This document shows, in pieces, positions 2,465 through 17,112 of a stretch of DNA of 64,000 nt. Numbering within the stretch: the first letter of the stretch is position 1; each line of letters begins with the position of its first letter. Both the position numbers and the translations under genes were made by a program. The DNA comes from Pelomyxa schiedti (lineage: Eukaryota; Protista; Evosea), in NCBI GenBank assembly GCA_020536535.1, contig JAHLWZ010000093.1, positions 1-64,000 on the forward strand, read 5' to 3'. Under the pieces are notes generated by a model. The model was not told the DNA's origin and did no database searches. It worked only from the letters and a program-made list of their open reading frames with translations.

Positions 2465-5400
2465 ATGACGACGCAGGGGAGTGGTGTCGGCGCCAACTTG
2501 GTTTCAGGTGGTGACAGCGTAGGATCTTACAGATCGTTTTTGTCCCTGGCCGGCGCCGCCCAGAGTGTGTCTATGTCAAAATTTAATTTAATGAAAGAAA
2601 TCCACACCAATAGAAATGACAATTACTACGAACTTATTTAGTTATTCTATCTTTATTTTGATTGCCTAACTCTGGGAACAGACAATTTCATGTCTAGGTT
2701 TTGGACCTCCACCAGTTTGTTTTTTCCATCCCTCTTTTTTCAATCTAACTTGAGTGAATAAGGTGGGAGCAAAACGATTGATGAGAGTCCACAAGTCCTC
2801 AATGAAGTGTTCCAACACTCAGGGGAATCAATCAACTTGAAAGGTGAATCTCTGGTACCCTTGGCACTTGTTCTTAGACCTAATAACAGGTCTAAGCTAT
2901 GGTGAGGAAGGAGCTAAAGCTTTTGCAACAGTTATTGCGGGAAAGCTTGATCTCACCACATTACAGTTGGGTGGAGGTAATAAGTTCCAAAGAAAAATCC
3001 AATTCACAAAGTTAAGGTCTTTTCCCGATCGAAATCGTAAGAACAATATCTTCAGCTCTATGCTGCAGCAATTCTCTTACTGATCTCTCTTTCACAGGTT
3101 TCATTTCATCTCTTGTGTTCTCACTCAAAACCATATTAAATAGATGGGAACATTGGCTTTGACGGTGCCAAGGTATTGTCAACAGTCATTACTACCAAAA
3201 AAATTCTTAGAAAGTTCAATATCTACGGTATGAGAACCAAGTAATGGTGCATTTTTAATTTGCATGTTGACAGGCAACAACATAGGGCCTGAGGGTTCTG
3301 TGGTGTATGCTTACATACTCCAAACCAACTCCTGCCTCAAGACTATAAATCTTGCGCGTATGACAATTTACAGCAACTCCTAACTGGAATAAGTGTATTT
3401 TAGGGAACAATATTGGTCCAGATGGCATGAAACCATTTATTGATGCATTAAGAGTCAATACTACGCTTACTGAGCTGGATTTAGAAGGCAATCCATATCT
3501 TGTAATCCTTGTGTTTTTAAAAAGTTGTAGGAAATAACATTGGTGACAGAGGTGCAACCTATCTTTGTACAGGATTGAAAGCAAACAATACAATTACCTC
3601 ACTAAATCTGTCAAGTATATTCTGACTGACCTCTTGAAAAAATGAATAACAGTCACAGAAAACAATATTGGAAATGATGGATCTCTAGTGCTGGCCAATG
3701 TATTACAGCACAATACATCCATTACTTCACTACTTCTGGGAGGTAAATCTTTGAACCGTTTCCCATTCGTTTAATGATGTGTAGAAAACAAGCTCGGACC
3801 GATTGGTGCCAGAAACATTACTACTACACTTGAGCAAAATGCTACATTGACATCCCTTCATTTGGAAGGTTTTTGTCACTTTGTCGGTTCACAGTTATAT
3901 TCAACAGTTCCCAGACAACAATATTGGCCCTGAAGGTGGGAAAGCAATATCCGATTGTCTCAAGTCGAATGACGAGCTCTTAGAACTAGTTATCGATAGT
4001 TGAGAAGTGGTTTTTATTTGATTGAATAATTGTAAGCAGAGAATAATATTGGAATTGGAATTCAGCACATTTCTGAGGCCCTTATAATGAATTGTACACT
4101 CACTAGCCTTTCATGTGCCTGTAAGTGAGACCTTTATGAATGGCGAACTTATATCACCAGGCAATGCAATTGGACCTGATGTCGCAATGGGACTAATTTT
4201 TGCACTGAAGTTGAACAGCACTCTAACTTTTCTTGATGTTCAAGGTAACAACTACCCACCAAATTCTTCTTTTCCCCACATCAAATCAAGGAAACGAACT
4301 TGGTGTAGAAGCTCGTAATTTTCTCACAGAAACTTTGCGATCAGGCAACAGTACCCTGACAGCTTTGTCTATTGAGTGTACTTTTTTTTAAATTTTACTT
4401 TATGCTGAACATTCTCAGCAAATCAGTGCGACCCTACCGTTTCAGCACTCCTTGCAGCAAATGAGGCATTTTCACGAAGTATCGCAGCTGAATTCACTGT
4501 GCCAGAAGAGACACTATGCCAGAAAGAGGGAGCGGATTGCCGGAGCCTTTTTTCTGAAGCTCTGTGGAGATGCGTTCTTGCTGCAGATGTACCTTCTGTA
4601 ATTGCCCTCCTCAACTTGTATACGCACCACATTGCCCACTGGGGGTTAACCTCTGAGCAATGTGTGAACAGAACTCCAAAAAGAGTTGTCACTATCATAG
4701 ATTCATCGGCCACATCTTATTCCCTGTTGTGGCACGCATGTGAGCATAGTACGACTTGCATACATACGAGCTGTGCTCTGGTGCGGGCACTTCTTGTGAA
4801 AGGAGGCGTGGATATCTCTCATTTTGATACTCATGCGGCAGGCGAGCTGGTTTTGATGCTGTCCAAGTTGTCTACTTCACATCAACATTTCTGTAAATCA
4901 GTAGGTGACCCTCACGGTTGTGGTGCGGGAGCACCTTTTGACCTTGAATGGACAGCAGTGAGAATATGGGCCAGAGCTGGCAATTGGGCTGCCGTTTCTG
5001 AGGCACTTTCTTCCCACAGAGGACCTTCAATTTACAACAGACAAGTTGCCAATTTATCACACTTGCATCTTTCTACCCTGCCAAAAGCTATTGCCGAGAA
5101 ATTAGTCTGTCAGGGTTGGATGACCATTGACCTTTCTGGAAATCACTTGAACTCGCTTCCATACTCTCTGCACCTCACTCGGAATCTCCATGTTGAAGGA
5201 AATCCTCTCTCTGAAATTCCTGCAAATTACCGATCGGGAGACTACCCAACTCGTTCGCTGCAACACTGGCTTAGATTTGGCGGTCCTCCTTCGGAGGTAT
5301 GATAAGCCCATTTGTAAAACTTCTAATCTACAAAGTGGGTTCACCGGAAACTGGTGATAGTTGGGGAAGAGAATGTAGGGAAAACTACACTCCTGCAATG

Positions 5401-8400
5401 TCTCTCCAAAGGAAAGCCCATTAAATCCAAGAGAAGTGTAGCTACAAATGGAATTTCTATACACTCACCTTTCCAAATGAATAAAAACAGTGCTTTGAAG
5501 TGGGTTGCCTGGGACTTCGGTAAATCTCCCCTCTGGTATTTCTCGTTTCACATTTTTCAGGTGGCCATGAGGTCCTTTATCCATCACACCAGGTTGAAAT
5601 GTACTTTTTCCCCACTTTCACGTGACTTCTTCCATTACAGTTTTTCTTGGGAAGTAACTCTGTCTTTGTTGTTGTGGTAAATGCTGCCACTCTTGTAACT
5701 CCCAAGACGTCGGAGCTCCCTCTCTCTTACAAGCGAGTTCAATATTGGTTGAATCAAATACATGCATCCCAGCGGCAAATCGTTGGTGTTGGCGGGGTGG
5801 GGGGAATCACTGGTGGAAGTAATATAAGCTTTACACCTTCAGAGGGCTTTGGTGGCGGAAGCTCTACAAAAATAGTACTTGTTGGCACACATGCTGATGT
5901 AGTTGGTGTAGATACTGCGGCCGAATCTCTCCTCAGCGTATTTGATAATGACAATACACCACGAGAGGCTTTACGCTGTGTCTTTGTATTGAGCAGTTCC
6001 ACTGGGGAAGGAAGATGTGTGCGCAAAGGTGGAAACCATGGTGTTGTGCATACTAATGAATCTACTTCATCCAGTTCCAATGCTATCCAGCTACTATGCA
6101 AGTATATTGAAGAATTGGCATCAGAAAAAGTGTATGTCCCTGACCGCTGGGTGATTTTACATGATAGATTGGCTGGAGGTTCAAGTGGAAGTAGTTCAGC
6201 CTCCCCTCCCAAGGGAGCTGCAACCGGCACTGCAGAGCAAGAGCCCATCATGCAGTGGAAACATTTTGCTTCAGTAGCATCTCTATGTGGTGTTAGTTCA
6301 GATGAAGATCTTTTGTGGTGCTCTAACTTCCTGAGTGATGCCGGTACTATTATCCACTTCCGTAAGACTGTTACTGCGACAGTACTTGAAGAAGCCGTTG
6401 CAAGCGATGTTGTAAGTGTTACAAGTAACGACCATGGCGGTCTCGTATTACAAAGTAACCCCAGTGATGCACCTATTGACCTGGAGGATATTGTAGTATT
6501 AAATCCACTGTGGCTTTCCCGCGTTATGAAATCTGTTATAACCATCGGAAATAACAATTCCTGGATCAAACTAGGATTCCTACAATCTTCCAATGTACCA
6601 CATCTGTTTGCTGAGTTCCCAAAGCCTACCCACCACGCTCTTCTTCAATTACTACAGCAGTTTGAAATCGCTCAAGAAATGCATGACAGTTCTTTCCTCT
6701 TTCCCTGCTTGCTTCCCCCAACTCCTACACCCCCTCCTACATCGCCATGGTGGGTCGTACCAGCGTCAAGCTCTGACCCTTCTCACACGACAGATGCCGA
6801 AAGAGGAATGTTCATGGGAAGAGTGTTCCGGCTTCAGTTTATTCCTGTTGGATTTTTCTCTAGATTGATGTCCAGAATTCTTAGTGTTAATTCTGTGCTA
6901 CCAGGCTTGCTGTGGAAGGGGGGCATTACCGTTCTTCATAGGACCCCTCGCCAACAGAGTCAGTTGCCATCTGTAGCACTTGTTACTTGCGATGACAGCC
7001 AGTTTGTCTACATTCACGTTTACTCTACAATGTCTCCATCAAAGGAGATTACCACTACTGCATCAAGTGAGAGTTCTATATCGGAAGCTGACCCTTCTGC
7101 ACTACCCCACTCCACCCCGCCCTCGTATTCACGCTACGACATTAATAGTGGGGGAAGTATATTTTTGGGTCTAATTGTCAGTGTGGTTACAGCATTTGTC
7201 AAAAACCAGTATCCTATTCTGTTTCAGGATATTTCTCAACACTGTGCTTGCCCTTACTGCCTTACAAAGACATATCTGGGTGAAACACACTCCGCTGAGT
7301 CTGCCCCTGTCGGTGCTTTCTCTCCTACACCGTCATCTGCCCATCACTTTCACTTGCGGGAATGTGTTGATCTTGTCCGACGTGGAGAAACGACTCTGTT
7401 GTGTCCAACACAACATTCGGGATCGCAGCAGGTTCCCGTGTCATTACTGGCACCGGATATCGTACTTCTTCCATTAATCGACCCATCGGAACTGCAAGTG
7501 TTCAGTTCACAGGAGACCTCGACGGAAAAAGTCAAAAATCCTCAACCCAGTACACAGGCTTTCTGCCAAACAGGGGCTTATGGCAAAGTGTTTAAAGGAT
7601 TGCTGAGAGGAAATCAAGTAGTGGCGGTAAAAGAGTCACTTTCAGAAAGATTGCCAAGCTTTGTGGACTTGGCACTTGAGTGTGAGGTTATGTGCCGCGT
7701 TCCACCACATGATAATCTTGTACACTTCTGGGGAGTATGTTTACAACCTCGCTTACGTGTTATCATGGAATTTATTTTCCCTGCTTATTGTCCAAGGTTG
7801 GAGAGTGTTCTTGGGGGTGTTGGTATTGTTGGAAGTTCTGCTTTGAGCAGCCCAGATCTGATGAAACTTATTACGGTTGTGGCTAATGCCTGCACTAAGT
7901 TGAATCCAGAAACCGCAACTGCGGGTAAGCCTGGTGCAAGCAATTCTGTTGGAATAGCTGGCGTTAAAATTGAAGATGAATGTACTCTTATAAAATACCG
8001 AGAAACACTGGAGTATGTCATTCCAGTCCATTTGCGAAAGAAGATTCTTCTGGATATTGCACAGGGCCTTAACCACCTTCATACACAATCACCATCTATT
8101 GTTCACGGAGACTTGCATTTAGGTTTTAACAATCTTTTTTTTTTTAATTAACAAAAACACATAGGCAATATTCTAATATGCTCTCTGGACCCTACTGGTG
8201 AAGGACCTTGGGCAAAGGTTTCCATAAAAAACGCCTCAGATTGTTCTAATTTTCAGCTAGATCACCGATTTTGGCTTGGCCCAGTATCTGTACGTTTCTA
8301 TTTTGCCTCTCATTACCTTAACGAGGCCAGGTATGGAGGTGCAGCTGTAGATAGAAGACAACGACTTCCTGTTAATGTATTTGCCCCCGAAGGTTTGTCA

Positions 8401-10933
8401 AATATCAGTCCCACAGCAACTCATTTCCACCTAGTCATCCGGGGTTCAAAAATTGACACCAAGGCCGATGTTTGGAGCTATGGTTTTGTCTTGAAATTGT
8501 TTCTTTTTTTTTGTTTACACATGTAGGCATGTGCGTGCGACATTTTATTGACCCCTTTACACCAGTCTTCAATCCTTCCGAGGTTTCTCATTTCAACATT
8601 GTTTGTAACTAACCCCATAGTAGATAGGTACTGATGATTTGGAAGCGCGGGAGGCAGTTGGCTCAGGAAGAGCGGTGCCGCACCCTCCACCTCATAGTCC
8701 TTCTGGTTGGACCTGTCCCCCATGGGCATCCACTCTTATGACCTGGTGCTGGGCTCCAGTTTCTAAGACAAGACCAACATGTGCCCAGATGATTTCTTAC
8801 TTACAAAGGTAACAGTTACTGCCTTGCCATTACTGATTTTTCCCAGTGGCTACACTCCATTTAAATTTACCTTGAACAAACCATGCTATAGCACACACTT
8901 TGTGACACCTGAATCGCAACAACAACCGGGAATTGTTCCACTCCCTCCGACTCCCGGATTGACATCCGCTTCTTCAGCTCCATCAATCCCAGAAGGCTAT
9001 CAGGCACACCCACGCTGTCATGTTGTTGCATGCGTGGGAACGCGCTTCTGGTGTGGATTTGTTGATGGAACTATACTCGTTTTTGAGCACTGCACCGAAA
9101 GTGCGCAGCCTAATTCCGATTGCACCACTCCCAAAGCCGTACAACCTCCAGCAACTGGAACACCTTCTGTGGAGCCTCTACAGTGTCATAATACAAGTGT
9201 TGTCTGGCAGTGGACTGCTCACTGGGGCCGTGACCCTGGTGTTACCTCGATCATTTACGTCAAGCACGCCTTGGTTGCCATAAGGTATTTTACCATAGCA
9301 CTACAGGGAATTTCTTACTGTATGTAGTGCCTCAATGAGTGGGCAAATAAAAGTTTGGCATTCACAGACGTTCTCCCTTGTATGCCAGGTCACTCAGCAA
9401 AGTGCTTTACCCCTTCCTCCCCTGACGGCCCCACAAATTCCAACAGCACCCCCAAACCCTATTGTCAGTCACACACCGCCTCCACCACCCCCATCAACCC
9501 TTAGCAGTATACTAAGCACTACAGCCAGCCTATTCTCCCTCACATCATCAAGTTCATCATCGCAACCTGCAACTTCCAGCACTTCACAGAGACGTGCACC
9601 TGGTGTAGGGTGCCTTGCTATCTGTGGTGAGGTTGGCGGAACGGGATCGGCACAACAGTTGTGGACAGGTGACGTCCGAGGCAACGTATGCGTTTGGGAC
9701 TGCATTGATAGCGGCGTGGGTTTCAGTATCTGCTACCACACCACATTCTCTGTATCCAACAAGGTCGAAATCGCTTACACCACTCTTCCAACTCAATCCA
9801 CATCGTCATCCCACAGTGCATTTCGGAATGCACTTCCAACAGATGGAACTCAGCCACACACCTATTCTCCTTCATTACTCCCATCACCAGTCGAAGCAAC
9901 GAACACAGACTCCTCAACCTCCGACGCACCACTCGCTACCGCCTCTCTTCCCCCACCCCCCACACTCTTGCCAAGCGGTGAAGTCATCTCAATGGCATCA
10001 CTATACAATACCATGCTAGTTATCTGCAAACGGGGAGCCGTCATAGCCTTTGACACCAACTCACTCACACCCCTCGCCCTCTACACCCACACATCACTCG
10101 ACTTGAGCAAGCAGTCACTATCATGCCTGATAGTTGCCGCATGCCACAACATGCACCACCCGCAGCAAACGGAAAGGAAGCAACCCACCGGCAAAATGAT
10201 ATCACTTTGCGAGCACCGGCTACCCAGCTCCCAATCCCAAGCACCAACACCAACACAAGAAACCACCGGGCCCAACGCAGCATCGCCGGCGACGCCCCTC
10301 AGTGTGTGGATAGGAACCAAATGCGGAACAGTGGCCGGGTGGAGGGTCACACACCAACCCGGCGATGTTCCCCCATACACACTCACACCAACATGCTCAT
10401 TCAAAGCCGGAGACGAAATGGTATCTGACCTGAGCTGCGCCTGCGTATCCTCTCCCTCCCACAATCCTCTCCCAGCAACATCAACATCAACTACCACCAC
10501 CACCACAACAACCTCCAGTCCGCGTCGCTCCGGTTCCTCATCATCATCCACATCCACATCCACATCAGCATCATCATCGCCGGCATCCTCAGTATCATCG
10601 GCATCATCACCCAGTGACCATCACTACGCATCGACATCGTCGCGAATCCACCGGCATGTTGTTGTTGGGGCTCTGATGAGCAGCGGATTCTCGTGCTGGG
10701 ACGCACAGCTTTTCACGCCGGTGTGTAGCTCAGGGCCTATTCACAAGGGGTTCGCTCTTCGGCGGGTGGCGATTGGGCCTCCTGGGGGCGTGTGCCACCA
10801 CCCACACGCCACAAGCGTAATTGTGGGAGCGGACCAGCTGGCCCTGTCGACCATTGCTACGATGTCTGACAGGAACACCCTCCACGTGTGGTGCACTGAA
10901 CCTCAGGAATCTACAACAAAGTCATTCCTATAG
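2465..10933 (+). CDS. Roco protein kinase: RI-type LRR array - ankyrin-like - LRR - Roc - COR - TKL kinase - WD40-like C-terminus (multi-exon)
   Basis: About 12 NNIGxxG LRR exons; GEENVGKTT P-loop; WDFGGHEVLYPSHQFF; COR motif IVVLNPLWLSRVMKSVIT; kinase GAYGKV, VAVKE, HGDLHLGN, ITDFG, APE, DVWSYG; beta-rich tail (VWDC, VWIGT, VWCT). 5' start is inferred. Confidence 0.9.
2890..4376 (+). repeat. Array of ~12 LRR exons of 81-87 nt (mostly 84 nt) separated by ~40-55-nt phase-1 introns
   Basis: Counted exons such as GNIGFDGAKVLSTVITTKKILRKFNIY and NNIGPEGSVVYAYILQTNSCLKTINLA, each 2 nt + 27 codons + 1 nt. Confidence 0.85.
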
Positions 10934-11110: not shown

Positions 11111-12963
11111 TCAAGGAGTGGAGGTGTACACTCTGACCAAATTGTCCCAGGACGCCGTGAATAGTGCGTCACCCGAGGGATTCAGAGACACAGCTGTAAG
11201 CCTGCCCAAGGCACTTGTATCTCGCCAAGCCATTCTGCTGGACAGAACTGACCAGGCTATTAGCACGCCATCGTCGTAGCATGCAAATAGACTGTGCCCG
11301 CTCGCGGAAAATGCAACGCTGGTGATTACACGTAATGTTGATTCGCTTTGAAATACGGCAGCTGCACGGGTCGACCGCCGGTCGTATACACGGCAAATTG
11401 GTTCGTCTGTTCATTGTAAGTGTGGCTAAGTCGATGGAATTAATTCAACAAAACCTCCGGCAGCTGCGAATAGAATTCCATTGCCGGAAATACATACGGA
11501 ATAGATGTCACTGTAGGCATCGCGCCATGTGATGACTGGATTTTGGTCCCGTATGTCATAAATTCGCGTTCTTGCATCCGTTGCTCCACTCGCAAATTCA
11601 TTTGGATTTGTGGGGCAAACTGCCACTGACATCACATCACCCTGCAGTTTGTTTAGTTTGATAACTAAACAAGAACAGAATATTTTGGAATCCTACGGTT
11701 GAACCTGTGAATTTGGTGATTGCGGTTCCCGTTTCCACATCCCACAAAATGCAGGTTCCGTCTCCGGAGCTGCTCACGAGTCTTTCCGTAGTGTTCATGA
11801 ATCGCACTGTGGAGACATATCCTTCGTGCCCAAGAAATTCTTGGCACGGGTGACCACTTCCTGTCTTCCAGTCATACAAACTGACAACGTCTAAAGTGGT
11901 ATTAGATCATCCATAAACCAAAAAAAAAAACGAATGTGAACACTTACCGTCAAACCCACCACATACGGCATATTTGAGACATGGCGAAAGGACACTTGTA
12001 AGAATATAACTGGAGAGATGAGGAATTCCTAAAACGAGTGACAGTTTATGTTTCTTGGAGTTCCATTTCTAAGAAGATGAGTGATCATCATGTGACGTTA
12101 ATGGGAAAACAGCCACTCGTACCCATAGTCCTAATCTCGCATCTTTTGAGTTGGTGATAACAGTGTCATCGTTTCCGGCATACATGCCGTAGATATAGTT
12201 TGTGTGGAATGTTCCTTGTGCACTCAAGTGGAGATTCTCGTAGGATGGCTGGCGAATATTGAAGGGTCGGGTTGATGGTGAGCTCCCGAAGGATGGGATA
12301 ATTGAATGAAGTCTTGTAAGAAAGCTCTGTGGTTGCCGCTTTGGAGTGATCAGGGGGTCATTACACAGAGAATAGTTGCTAAGAACACACAACCCGCGGC
12401 CAGGAGGTCCCTTGAAAATACTGTACACCTACTCCAGTGAGTAAGTGAGAAGTAAACATACAGTATGTAATGAACAAGGGAAGACTCACCAGAGTTTTCC
12501 ACCTTTTGCACACCAGACAGCAAACAACAGCAGGTTTCACTCTCAGCTCATATAGAGCCACACCAAGCATGCACAAAGATACCTCAGCCCTCACTCCAGT
12601 ACCTCCAGAAGAATGAGAACAAGAATCAAGATACAATTCGCAGGATTCCACAGTTGTGCATGCACCAAATATGCCTTGAGCAAGTTCGAAATAGTCGATA
12701 GTCTGCGCTGTCACATTTGCGTAAGTGTTCGAGGATGCTTTGGTTGTGACAGCAGTTCCCGGCGGCGGAGGCAGCGAGGGCGGCGTGTGAGCGCGGTCAC
12801 CCACGTAAGGCGATAATGGGACGCCCAACGACGAGGAGTCAATTGGACCCGCAGCACCAAACGTAAACCCAAAGACCACCAACATGGGTTCGTCGGGCAA
12901 ACATGTCACAGATGTAACCGCCCTCGCTGCTCCCTTGTTTCTCCTTCTGTCTGATGACGCCAT
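11111..12963 (-). CDS. Split-F-box + G-protein-beta-like WD40 protein, copy B
   Basis: N-terminal LPDEPMLVVFGF...CLVCKRWKTL. WD blades match G-beta: LGHEGYVSTVRF, LVSSSGDGTCILWDVETG, GDVMSVA, ASGATDARTRIYDIR, LFTASWDNLVRVY. Stop at 11111-11113. Confidence 0.85.
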
Positions 12964-13056
12964 AACACCACACCGTTCGTGCGGTACGTTTCAATGACAT
13001 GGTTTCGTCGAACCATCAAATTTATTGTTTTTCATCTTTTCGGAATAGTGGCTTTG

Positions 13057-14872
13057 TCATGGAATGGAGGTGTACACCCTGACCAAATTGTCCCAGGATG
13101 CCGTGAATAGTGCGTCACCCGAGGGACTCAGAGACACAGCTGTAAGCCTGCCCAGGGCACTTGTATCTCGCCAAGCCATTCTGCTGGACAGAACTGACCA
13201 CGCAACTAGCTCCCCAGTCAGATAGGATGCAAATAGACTGTGCCCGCTTGCTGAGAACTCGACGCAGGAAATTCCAAGGTTTAGTGAATCGTGTTTGAAA
13301 ACCGCGGCAGCGCGGGTCGAACGCCGGTCATACACACGGCAAATTGATTCACCTGTTCATTTGAAATTGTGTGTTAGTTGATGACCAGTAGAGAGTAATT
13401 CAACAAAACCTCCGGCGGCTGCATATAATGTTCCGTTGCGGGAAATACATACAGAATCGATGTCGTTCTCCGCGTCGGACCAGGTGATTACCGGCTTTGG
13501 GTGCCGTATGTCATATATTCGGGCTTTGGTATCAGTTGCTCCGCTCACGAATTCATTTGGGTTGGTGGGGCTAATGGCCACTGTCATTACGTCACCCTGT
13601 AGTTGTTTAGCCGGGCGGCAAGATTCATTTAGGGGTACTACGGTGGAACCTGTGAATTTGGTGATTGCGGTTCCCGTTTCCACATCCCACAAAATGCAGG
13701 TTCCGTCTCCGGAGCTGCTCACGAGTCTTTCCGTAGTGTTCATAAATCGCACTGCAGACACATATCCTTCGTGCCCAAGAAATTCTTTGCACGGGTGACG
13801 ACTTCCTGTCTTCCAGTCGTACAAATTGACAATGTCTAAATTAATAATAAGAAATCTATGATACAATAAAACCAATGACTTACTGTCAAGTCCACCACAT
13901 CCGGCATATTTGAGACATGGCGAAAGAACACTTGTCATAATATAACTGGAGAGATGAGGAATTCCTAAAACGAGTGACAGTTTATGTTTCTTGGAGTTCC
14001 ATTTCTAAGAAGATGAGTGATCGTTAATGGGAAAACAGCCATCCGTACCCATAGTCCTAATTTCGCATCTTTTGAGTTGGTGATAACAGTGTCATCGTTT
14101 CCGGCATACATGCCGTAGATATAGTTTATGTGGAATGTTCCTTGTGCGCTCAAGTGGAGATCGTCGTAGGATGGCTGGCGAATATTGAAGGGTCGGGTTG
14201 ACGGCGAACTCCCAAAGGATGGGATAATTGAATGCAGTCTTGTAAGAAAGCTCTGTGGTTGCCGCTTTGGAGTGATCAGGGAGTCGTTACACAGAGAATA
14301 GTTGCTAAGAACACACAGCCCGCGGCCAGGAGGTCCCTTGAAAATAGTATATACCTATCAGTAGTGAGGGAATACAGGACAAGGAAACACGGAGAGAACT
14401 AGGGACGGCTCACGAGAGTTTTCCACCTTTTGCACACCAGAGAGCACACAGTAGCAGGTTTCGCCCTCCATTCATGCAGAGCCACACCCAGCATGCACAG
14501 GGATACCTCAGCCCTCACTCCAGAATAACCAGAGCCGGAATCAAGACACGATTCACATGATTCCCTGCCTGTAGCATTCAAAGTTGTGCATGCATCGAAT
14601 ATGTTTTGAGCAAGTTCGAAATAGTCAATAGTTTGCGCTGTCACATTTGCATAAGGTTTCGAGGATGCTTTGGCTGTGGCAGCAGTTCCCGGCGGCGGAG
14701 GCAGCGAGGGCGGCGCGGACGCGCCGTCACCCACGTAAGGCGATAATGGGACGCCCAGCAAGGAGTCAATTTGTCCCGCAGCACCAAACACGAACCCAAA
14801 GACAACCAACATGGGTTCGTCGGGCAAACATGTCACGGACACCACCCTCGCTCCCTTGCGTGTTGACGCCAT
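13057..14872 (-). CDS. Split-F-box + G-protein-beta-like WD40 protein, copy A
   Basis: Tandem paralog of copy B with similar exon layout: SSYIMTSVLSPCLKYAGCGGLD, LGHEGYVSAVRF, GDVMTVAISP, LFTASWDNLVRVYTSIP. Confidence 0.85.
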
Positions 14873-15050
14873 AACCCATAAGGCACCACCACGAGCACCC
14901 GTTGGTCGTTTGACGGCACAAGTTAGTTAGAGGTGAAACAATTCAAAGAGTACATTAAAAGCACAAAAAAGAAGCAGAAGTGCACACTCAGTTGAGAAGT
15001 AAGTACTCCTGTCCGTGTGTGGTGATCGTCATTCAGAAACAAACGCGGAA

Positions 15051-16814
15051 ATGTTTTTCAAGAAGAAGCCGAAACCAACAACACCGAGTGCCAGTGCCAC
15101 TTCAACTGCCCCCCCAAAGGTAATGAGTCGAACCAATTGTTGGTAGTTGTTGAATTTTGTGTTCTATTGTGTATTAATAAAGTAAATTGGCAGGTTGGGA
15201 GGGTGTTTGGCACCACGTGGGTTGAATCAGCATTGAATAGTGACCCCGATGGGTTGGTACCGGCTCCTCTGCGCCATGCTGTTGGGTATGTACACTGCCT
15301 GCGTGCGAACCAGCTGCTTTTTGGTTGTAACCCACTTATTATTAGCTACATTGAATCAAACGAAGAACACATGAGGATGGAGGGAATATACAGGACTTGT
15401 GGGTCGCGTGCCAGAGTGGATGAATTAGTAGGTACCGCATATGATTTAAATTCCATGTCTTAAATTTTATTGTGGGACAGAGATGATTGAGGCCGGGAAG
15501 GAGCCTGACTGGAAGGTGTGTCTTGAAATTTTGGAAGCGTGACAACTTTTAGGAGTGGGAAGTAGAATCAGCTACATCTCTCATAATCCGGCTGATAGCA
15601 ACAACGGAGACTATATGGGGTGATGTTAAAGAGGCCATGGTACAGAACTTCGACAATCTACCAGTACTTGGGGAGATATTTTCCACCCTTCCGCTACAAA
15701 ATAAGGAATCTATAAGGTCGCCTTAAACTCTGAATCTCTTTCCCATACTCATTCCCCAAAGGTTCTTGGCACAGCACCTAAATCGAATTTGTTGTCGCTC
15801 AGCCTACAATCGCATGACAGTTGAAAATATCAGCATTTGCTTTGGGGGATCATATGCGTTGCTCTTGCCGATCTTCATCTCAAACATAGATACTGTATCC
15901 TTCTTATTCCTTGATCCCCCGCTAATATTATTTTACAGTACTTTGCACATAATAGTACAGTTGTATTTGGCATTAGCCTGCAGGAGGCCGCCGTGAGAAG
16001 TGACCCTGATGGACTCATACCAAGTCCACTGAAGGTATCCCTGGACTTCCTGGATAAACACGCTGGAACTCCGCTACTGTGGCAACAGTCCGGTTCCTAC
16101 TCCAGAGTAAAAGAACTTCGGCTATTGTTCAATTCCGGTCAACCTGTGAGTTTCCGCTCCTCCCAACCCAAAAAAACCAACCTAAGCACTTCTTATCACC
16201 TAATCAACTAAACAAACATAAACCATTATACAAATACTAAAATAAAACAGGTAAAATACCGCCCGGAGGAAGTGTGTGAAGCCACCAGCCTCGTTCTTCA
16301 GTTCTTCCGGGACACCACCGATCCCCTCTTCGACTATCCCCTACTCTCCGCTATCTCCGCACTGCCCCCCGCTCGCGGCGGCCCCCTACACTCCCTGCTC
16401 CCTCCACCACTCCCTGCTAGCTCCTCTACCACCACTACTACAACTGCATCCTCCTCTGCATCCCCTTGCACATGCACATCCGCATCCGCATCCACAACTA
16501 CATCGGATTCGGCGTCATCGACCACGAATACAGACATAATTGCGGCCATCCGCACGGCGCTGGGGCACTTGCCGCCCATAAACCAGGCCGTCACTCGCCG
16601 TATCTCGCAGCACCTGTTCCTGGTTGTGCAGGCGCGCGTGGCTGCGCATGCACCACCCACTGGTGGGCCACCGTCACAGCATAGTGTGATACTGGAGTGC
16701 AGGCAGCTGTGCGGGTGCCTGGGCGCCACCTTCAGCGATGTGTTCGCGGCAATAGTGGCAAACTATGACGGCATAATGCAGCCGGGCGGCGGTGACCCAC
16801 CGTCGTCCTCCTGA
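15051..16814 (+). CDS. Tandem RhoGAP-domain protein (second domain appears catalytically degenerate), multi-exon
   Basis: Domain 1: VFGTTW...SDPDGLVPAPLRHAV...MEGIYRTCGSRARVDEL. Domain 2: SDPDGLIPSPLKVSLDFLDKHAGTPLLWQQSGSYSRVKELR...VLQFFRDTTDPLF. Confidence 0.75.
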
Positions 16815-17112
16815 GATCAACCAAGCACACAAACGTAACCCGATCTCACTGTGTATCTCGTGCTAAATCCGTCTAGGTTGGGGTTGATAAAAACAACAGA
16901 ACGGAAAATGAAAACAAAAATTGTCAAACAACAGAAAAAATTAAATAAAAATGTAACTTCGTGTTTCGGTTTAAAGCGACATTACTACGAGACTTCACTT
17001 ACAAACGCAACGCGATGGCGTTTTTCGTTTGTTTGCGTTGTGTTGCACCTTTTTTTTTTTCCCTTTTGTCGATTTAAGTCGGTAGGCCGGGGCACTCTAA
17101 CTCGTGTGTTTT

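Follow-up and report, generated by a model that had tools for sequence, protein, structure and literature searches.

In the anaerobic amoeba Pelomyxa schiedti, two adjacent genes, both expressed, encode proteins whose WD40 propeller is derived from the beta subunit (G-beta) of heterotrimeric G proteins, not from generic WD40 repeats, and whose N-terminal region of 215 aa carries LPDEPMLVVFGF, followed 131-145 residues later by LVCKRWKTLV. FBXW proteins likewise have an N-terminal motif, then a linker and then a WD40 propeller, and a putative role of these G-beta-type proteins as SCF adaptors (FBXW-style substrate receptors) is plausible, at a confidence that we place just short of even.

The two genes lie in tandem on the minus strand of the window (the whole 64,000-nucleotide stretch of DNA that was analysed), and six-exon models built from the DNA bear out the two copies of the preliminary description. 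Copy B (13057..14872; exons 14872-14414, 14354-14049, 14004-13884, 13835-13642, 13596-13410 and 13352-13057) encodes a product of 520 aa identical to the public protein P0151, and copy A (11111..12963; exons 12963-12490, 12428-12123, 12068-11948, 11890-11697, 11641-11455 and 11406-11111) a product of 525 aa that is 84-85% identical to copy B and differs from the public P0021 only in that the public start is Met27. Each gene has five GT-AG introns of 44-61 nt. A third paralogue on another contig, P0152, has the same six-exon structure. GenBank names these proteins 'G protein beta subunit'. The family appears to be restricted to Pelomyxa and comprises three full-length genes plus a truncated copy.

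The propeller (copy B residues 216-520, 13057..14168; copy A residues 221-525, 11111..12242; both on the minus strand, introns included) matches the Pfam family WD40_Gbeta (PF25391) with 187.5 bits in copy B, 184.0 bits in copy A and 199.4 bits in P0152, against a curated cut-off of 150 bits and 110 bits for the second-best family. The motifs GHEGYVS, SSSGDGTCILWDVETG, GDVM and SWD are present, together with GGLD in copy B, where copy A has GGFD. AlphaFold predicts 28 strands for the copy B propeller (pLDDT 85-98); the best 50 Foldseek matches in the PDB are all G-beta-1, and the fold superposes on GNB1 with an rmsd of 1.4-1.9 Å over about 300 columns. By sequence, too, GNB1 is the closest PDB match (HMMER alignment over its residues 54-339), and the propeller is 33-38% identical to canonical G-beta of many eukaryotes. 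A tree separates the clade of G-beta, GNB5 and the Pelomyxa family from 12 generic WD40 propellers with an SH-aLRT of 100; the Pelomyxa family falls inside G-beta, its exact place there being unresolved, and has a stem 3.69 changes per site long. The earlier claim of a G-beta-specific propeller stands by motif, family model, structure match and phylogeny. When a piece of the propeller was searched against all representatives, multi-repeat WD40 proteins crowded the results, of which only the retrieval of P0021 was of use.

G-beta is among the most conserved eukaryotic signalling proteins and is thought to need G-gamma for folding and function. The N-terminal helix that binds G-gamma is absent from the Pelomyxa proteins, because the match to PF25391 starts only at profile position 54 and runs to position 339 of 340, with positions 1-53 unmatched. 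The alignment to GNB1 likewise begins at H54 and the sequence before it is unrelated to G-beta; the one helix that the full-length AlphaFold prediction places ahead of the propeller, at residues 187-196, is short and of low confidence. The preliminary description had the helix replaced by an F-box-like region: its replacement holds, but the F-box identity of what stands in its place remains below the Pfam cut-offs.

The N-terminal module of copy B is exon 1 (14414..14872, minus strand; 153 aa), which contains both F-box-like motifs with an Ala/Ser/Gly/Pro-rich insert between them and has a dN/dS of 0.31-0.41. The candidate F-box helix 1 is LPDEPMLVVFGFVF (14786..14827, minus strand; residues 16-29), and the candidate helices 2-3 are VCSLVCKRWKTL (14414..14449, minus strand; residues 142-153), which match Pfam F-box and F-box-like at E 0.004-0.03 over profile positions 23-36 and lie within residues 119-153, where dN/dS is 0.11-0.27. 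Their counterparts in copy A are LPDEPMLVVFGFTF (12859..12900, minus strand; residues 22-35), the LPDEP part of which precedes the start codon of the public model, and VCCLVCKRWKTL (12490..12525, minus strand; residues 147-158). Both motifs are invariant in all three paralogues.

F-box and F-box-like are the sole Pfam families matched by the N-terminus, at colinear profile positions and with E-values of 0.0013-0.14; the best scores, 18.9 bits for F-box-like (PF12937, curated cut-off 24.3 bits) and 17.2 bits for F-box (PF00646, 20.5 bits), leave no F-box domain above a curated cut-off in this region, and the match is confined to the domain's second half (from profile position 7 or 16 to 36). 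From LPDEP to CKRW the distance is 131 residues for copy B and 145 for P0152, against about 25 between an LPDEP-type motif and CKRW in a normal F-box; a helix lacking LP, AEVSLCMLGVAL, is found at the normal distance. The LPDEP piece alone (21-33 aa) had no match in Pfam and is probably too short for the HMMER filters. When the PDB was searched with a profile built from the three N-termini, no F-box protein came up at E up to 10. The matches were designed repeat proteins and a cutinase (E 0.03-1.4), and phmmer with exon 1 gave only chance matches in the PDB, to NDUFA3 (E 0.7) and an SH3 chimera (E 0.88). With residues 1-240 of P0152 as the query, a search of 5.8 billion proteins at E up to 10, which covers those of about 300-950 aa, brought up the three paralogues and nothing else. 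AlphaFold gives pLDDT 28-51 for residues 1-210 in the full-length prediction and 46 for a box-plus-linker piece, in which helices over SLRILGVALN and PAVVCCLVCKRWKTLVYTIFN are drawn without confidence from an alignment of three sequences. Most language-model neighbours of residues 1-60 belong to F-box clusters (score 0.70), and F-box clusters are the dominant named neighbours of each of two non-overlapping segments, residues 1-60 and 138-200, although scores of 0.70-0.82 in this atlas are often reached by shuffled sequences. Taken together, the sequence evidence is consistent with an F-box but sub-threshold. Comparison by HMMER, which had been proposed as a check of the F-box assignment, does single out the F-box families, but only at scores under their cut-offs; with no F-box found in the PDB and a low pLDDT besides, a working F-box is not established.

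How such a family could have arisen may be pictured as follows. A gene for the beta subunit of a heterotrimeric G protein would have been duplicated and then have diverged very fast, the propeller retaining the G-beta fold and many of its signature residues while the coiled-coil helix for G-gamma was lost in favour of an extension of about 215 aa with a split or degenerate F-box. In this F-box, helix 1 would correspond to LPDEPMLVVFGF and helices 2-3 to the segment ending in VCSLVCKRWKTLV, with a presumably disordered insert of about 105-120 aa between them. The most probable function would be that of a receptor which attaches to Skp1/Cul1 by its N-terminus and recognises its targets with the G-beta-type top face. 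For these targets the three paralogues may have different preferences, because the top face is where they differ most. The FBXW proteins (beta-TrCP, Fbw7/Cdc4 and Dictyostelium FbxA) similarly have an N-terminal LPxE...CKRW-type motif, a linker and a C-terminal WD40 propeller; unlike theirs, the candidate F-box of Pelomyxa is under the Pfam cut-offs and split by the insert, no helical linker domain is predicted, and the propeller belongs to the G-beta lineage and not to the known FBXW lineage. If the N-terminus docks on Skp1, the proteins would join an F-box to a bona fide G-beta, a combination for which a literature search found no description and of which the Pelomyxa genome paper makes no mention.

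Residues of the propeller were numbered by HMMER alignment to GNB1 in its native numbering (7d76_B and 1gg2_B, residues 54-339). As the preliminary description had it, Y145, D186, M188, D228 and W332 are kept in both copies of the window, W99 is Tyr and C204 is Thr. Y59 is also retained; K57 is replaced by Tyr, as W99 is, in all three paralogues, and three blade histidines are lost. Of the 14 top-face hot-spot columns for binding of G-alpha or effectors whose conservation in canonical G-beta is 90% or more, copy B keeps nine, copy A seven and P0152 twelve, a retention no better than that of other conserved G-beta columns (52-58%). Among the Pelomyxa paralogues no surface is less conserved than the top face, which in canonical G-beta is the most conserved one: 53% of its positions are identical in all three paralogues versus 77% elsewhere (Fisher p 7e-5), and dN/dS between paralogues is 0.35-0.51 versus 0.14-0.22. 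All regions of the genes are under purifying selection (dN/dS 0.07-0.53, exon 1 included), and the divergence of the top face fits diversified ligand binding better than conserved capture of G-alpha. The suggestion that these proteins capture G-alpha is weakened by the loss of K57 and W99, by hot-spot retention no better than background and by a top face that is the fastest-diverging part. It is rather improbable that the proteins are genuine SCF receptors of which at least one has kept the ability to recognise G-alpha-GDP or G-beta-gamma effectors by the retained hot-spot; the best candidate would be P0152, with its 12 of 14 residues. Were such an SCF receptor to exist, heterotrimeric G-protein signalling in this amoeba would be wired directly to ubiquitin-dependent degradation.

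The strongest alternative, to which we give about a third of our belief, is a divergent G-beta-like scaffold unrelated to SCF, with an extension that is a lineage-specific, largely disordered region for regulation or partner binding, F-box-like motifs that are chance or decayed remnants, and a propeller that serves as a G-gamma-independent interaction platform. Such a protein might still act in G-protein signalling, as G-beta-5 does with RGS in place of G-gamma. The sub-threshold F-box scores, the N-terminus without relatives beyond three paralogues in a search of proteins of about 300-950 aa, its low-confidence predicted structure, the G-beta family model passed with 7-12 of 14 hot-spot residues kept, and the GenBank annotation as G-beta all agree with it. 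On the other side, two separate motifs each point to an F-box, and both are invariant and under purifying selection; the G-gamma-binding helix is missing, every copy has K57 and W99 substituted, and the top face has diversified among the paralogues, as would not be expected with a conserved partner. The comparison with G-beta-5 and the R7-RGS proteins holds insofar as a G-beta paralogue with an N-terminal extension has abandoned classical G-gamma, but in G-beta-5 the helix is still present and the partner is a G-gamma-like (GGL) domain, and the tree does not place the Pelomyxa proteins with GNB5. Relative to GNB1-type G-beta, which they resemble in the seven-blade propeller and the retained residues, the Pelomyxa proteins lack the coiled-coil helix, carry the unrelated extension and stand on a very long stem branch. 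They are a family with a G-beta propeller, no G-gamma helix and a new N-terminal module, which has multiplied and whose normally frozen top face has diverged; even if the N-terminus does not dock on Skp1, this is a clear G-gamma-independent re-use of the G-beta scaffold, and the current database name is in need of correction.

The Pelomyxa proteins might instead, or in addition, be substrate receptors of a CUL4-DDB1 ligase, as mammalian G-beta is reported to be, which we consider improbable. Y-D-I-R and Y-D-R-R are kept at the positions of W211-D-V-R214 and F253-D-L-R256 of GNB1, which we take to be candidate DDB1-binding motifs of the WDxR type. According to PMC8946067, which cites Zha et al. 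2015, G-beta is reported to be a substrate receptor of DDB1-CUL4 (CRL4) for GRK2, which it recruits to CUL4A via DDB1; this is a precedent for the SCF reading as well. A G-beta propeller would be the target-binding subunit of a cullin-RING ligase in both cases, but canonical G-beta docks via DDB1, whereas docking in Pelomyxa would use a covalently attached F-box-like module, a conserved module that the CUL4-DDB1 explanation leaves unaccounted for. If the N-terminus does bind Skp1, the reported CRL4(G-beta) ligase would have a natural counterpart in these proteins.

Slightly less probable again is a membrane-tethered surrogate of G-beta, in which the hydrophobic stretch MLVVFGFVFGAAGQIDSLL would insert into the membrane in place of the lipid anchor that prenylated G-gamma normally brings. 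The Kyte-Doolittle maximum over 19 residues is 1.76 in copy B (residues 21-39, a window begun by the LPDEPMLVVFGFVF region) and 1.61 in P0152, at or just above the classical threshold of 1.6, and the sole weak PDB match of this stretch is a transmembrane helix of NDUFA3, a subunit of complex I. The unbroken hydrophobic core is only about 13 residues long, however, and contains three glycines, and the stretch also matches the hydrophobic pattern of F-box helix 1. Basic residues precede it, and under the positive-inside rule the WD40 propeller would implausibly lie outside the cytosol.

In contigs of an RNA-like run, X4, copy A lacks intron 4 as well as intron 1, the latter lying between exon 1 and exon 2, and copy B has introns 3, 4 and 5 precisely excised; the exon 1-exon 2 junction in copy A, together with the six-exon third paralogue, upholds the joining of the F-box-like exon to the WD40 exons. 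That exon 1 is a separate small gene, or that the copies are decaying duplicates, as intron 1 of copy B retained in one X4 contig (which would stop after 157 aa if translated) and the chimeric contigs might suggest, is very improbable, having been largely refuted by the precise excision of intron 1 in copy A, by phase-compatible GT-AG introns at the same positions in three of three paralogues, by exon 1 indels that are all multiples of three, and by the purifying selection on every region. The chimeric contigs, which join copies A and B, were made by the assemblers.

The minus strand of the window, which is eukaryotic DNA with short introns from the anaerobic archamoeba Pelomyxa schiedti (assembly GCA_020536535.1, contig JAHLWZ010000093), was read to build two gene models from the DNA: copy B (14872-13057, 520 aa) and copy A (12963-11111, 525 aa), arranged head to tail 93 nt apart, each split into six exons by five GT-AG introns (44-61 nt) whose positions and phases match between the copies. 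The sequences are already public, named simply as G-beta subunits. The public protein of copy B (P0151) is identical to its model, as is that of copy A (P0021) except that it starts at Met27 and thus lacks LPDEP, the first of two F-box-like motifs in the N-terminus. The upstream start (MAS...) is kept in all paralogues, indels near it are multiples of three, and the annotated start of P0021 is probably too far downstream; the 26 conserved residues left out of it, LPDEP included (12886-12963, minus strand), are in frame and kept in copy B and in P0152. The latter is a third full paralogue, 68% identical, encoded on a different contig by a gene of 2479 nt with the same six exons; its intron 5 (L001 9586-10180) is 595 nt long with a (CA)n microsatellite, the counterpart in copies A and B being 48-57 nt. 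Another protein named G-beta, P0153 (290 aa; L002 5503-6754, contig JAHLWZ010000199), comes from a truncated duplicate of the P0152 gene that has only its 3' part, from exon 4 onward, at ~94% DNA identity; the annotated N-terminus is unrelated, and the copy is probably a pseudogene or gene fragment.

The propeller of copies A and B is truly G-beta, as the preliminary description had proposed. Its pieces match Pfam WD40_Gbeta best, and the full-length proteins, P0152 included, reach 184-199 bits with that family (curated cut-off 150), other propeller families being far lower. The best 60 phmmer matches among all PDB sequences are GNB1; AlphaFold predicts a confident propeller of 28 strands at residues 220-517 (pLDDT 85-98), whose 50 best Foldseek matches in the PDB are G-beta-1 without exception (rmsd 1.4-1.9 A across ~300 columns). 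When placed in a tree with 45 sequences of G-beta and GNB5 plus 12 WD40 propellers of generic type, the Pelomyxa proteins group as a single clade (support 100). A split that itself has support 100 puts this clade with G-beta, on a stem so long (3.69 changes per site) that the exact sister cannot be named. Alignment to GNB1 in native numbering agrees with the residues earlier reported as kept (Y145, D186, M188, D228, W332) or replaced (W99 by Tyr, C204 by Thr), and adds K57 to Tyr in all copies. The alignment starts only at H54, so the G-gamma-binding helix is indeed absent.

The suggestion that this propeller might capture G-alpha fared less well. The G-alpha/effector hot-spot includes 14 of the columns that canonical G-beta conserves to at least 90%; copy B retains 9 of these, copy A 7 and P0152 12. 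Other columns of that conservation level are 52-58% retained, so the hot-spot is not specially preserved, except perhaps in P0152. With residues classed by strands and loops of the predicted model, no class is more conserved in canonical G-beta than the top face (0.84), and none is less conserved across the Pelomyxa paralogues: 53% of top-face positions are identical in all three versus 77% elsewhere (Fisher p 7e-5), with dN/dS of 0.35-0.51 versus 0.14-0.22. This pattern fits relaxation of the top face, or paralogues whose ligands differ; it is at odds with a conserved G-alpha partner common to all.

The N-terminus, earlier called F-box-like, consists of LPDEPMLVVFGF, an Ala/Ser/Gly/Pro-rich insert of variable length (about 105-120 aa), RAEVSLCMLGVAL...VCSLVCKRWKTLV and, lastly, a linker of 60 aa that is well conserved. 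A search covering proteins of about 300-950 aa detected no relatives of residues 1-215 beyond the Pelomyxa family. F-box and F-box-like are the sole Pfam families matched (E 0.0013-0.14), with colinear profile positions, all under cut-off and confined to the second half of the domain; F-box clusters dominate the named language-model neighbours of residues 1-200, 138-200 and 1-60, as leads only (scores 0.70-0.82). Weighed against these are a PDB profile search that found no F-box, low AlphaFold confidence and a distance between the two motifs that is abnormal for an F-box. On this balance F-box homology is probable, and binding of Skp1 is about as likely as not.

The family would combine two known kinds of protein, G-beta and FBXW, an architecture of which no description was found in the literature searched, including the P. 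schiedti genome paper. On the best reading, the new N-terminal docking module of these G-beta-derived, G-gamma-independent propellers is probably a split F-box, which would make them likely SCF substrate receptors. The chief alternative is a scaffold outside SCF whose F-box resemblance is coincidental or decayed. A CRL4-type role is conceivable by analogy, since a G-beta/DDB1/GRK2 case is published (cited in PMC8946067). A membrane anchor, for which the hydrophobic stretch has Kyte-Doolittle values of 1.6-1.76, is a weak candidate.

The genes are expressed and under selection. The locus is present in four public runs of one sample. Three look genomic and have the introns in place; run X4, the fourth, whose type is not on record, is taken as RNA because its contigs are spliced. 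Introns 1 and 4 of copy A and 3, 4 and 5 of copy B are exactly excised there, and an additional paralogue-chimeric contig is spliced at intron 2. The F-box-like exon is therefore joined to the propeller exons in copy A, as first proposed; for copy B the sole X4 contig across intron 1 (14355-14413, minus strand), of 422 nt in a run otherwise spliced, retains that intron. Retention could reflect carry-over of genomic DNA, RNA not yet spliced or a true isoform; translation, if it occurs, would end after 157 aa and yield only the N-terminal module. Public contigs also fuse copies A and B at homologous positions (11209/13156 and 12123/14004), and owing to such chimerism expression cannot be reliably assigned from reads to one copy in exons 2-4 (95% identical). 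Pairwise dN/dS lies between 0.07 and 0.53 throughout, at dS 0.22-0.9 (exon 1, 0.31-0.41; the part with the second motif, CKRW, 0.11-0.27), and introns and flanks are 56-78% identical versus 79-95% for exons.

Upstream of the copy B start codon, 123 bases (14890-15012) are swapped for six (GAGCAC) in contigs of runs X2, X3 and X4; the difference is an indel of haplotype or assembly origin and not an intron, because its ends are CA..GT and genomic-looking runs carry it too. The tandem pair is flanked on the plus strand by a RhoGAP gene (15051-16887) on one side and by a Roco-type gene (LRR-Roc-COR-kinase; 3057-10933, 2424 aa) on the other, the last exon of which is the open reading frame at 9335-10933, Ser/Thr/Pro-rich with WD-like motifs.
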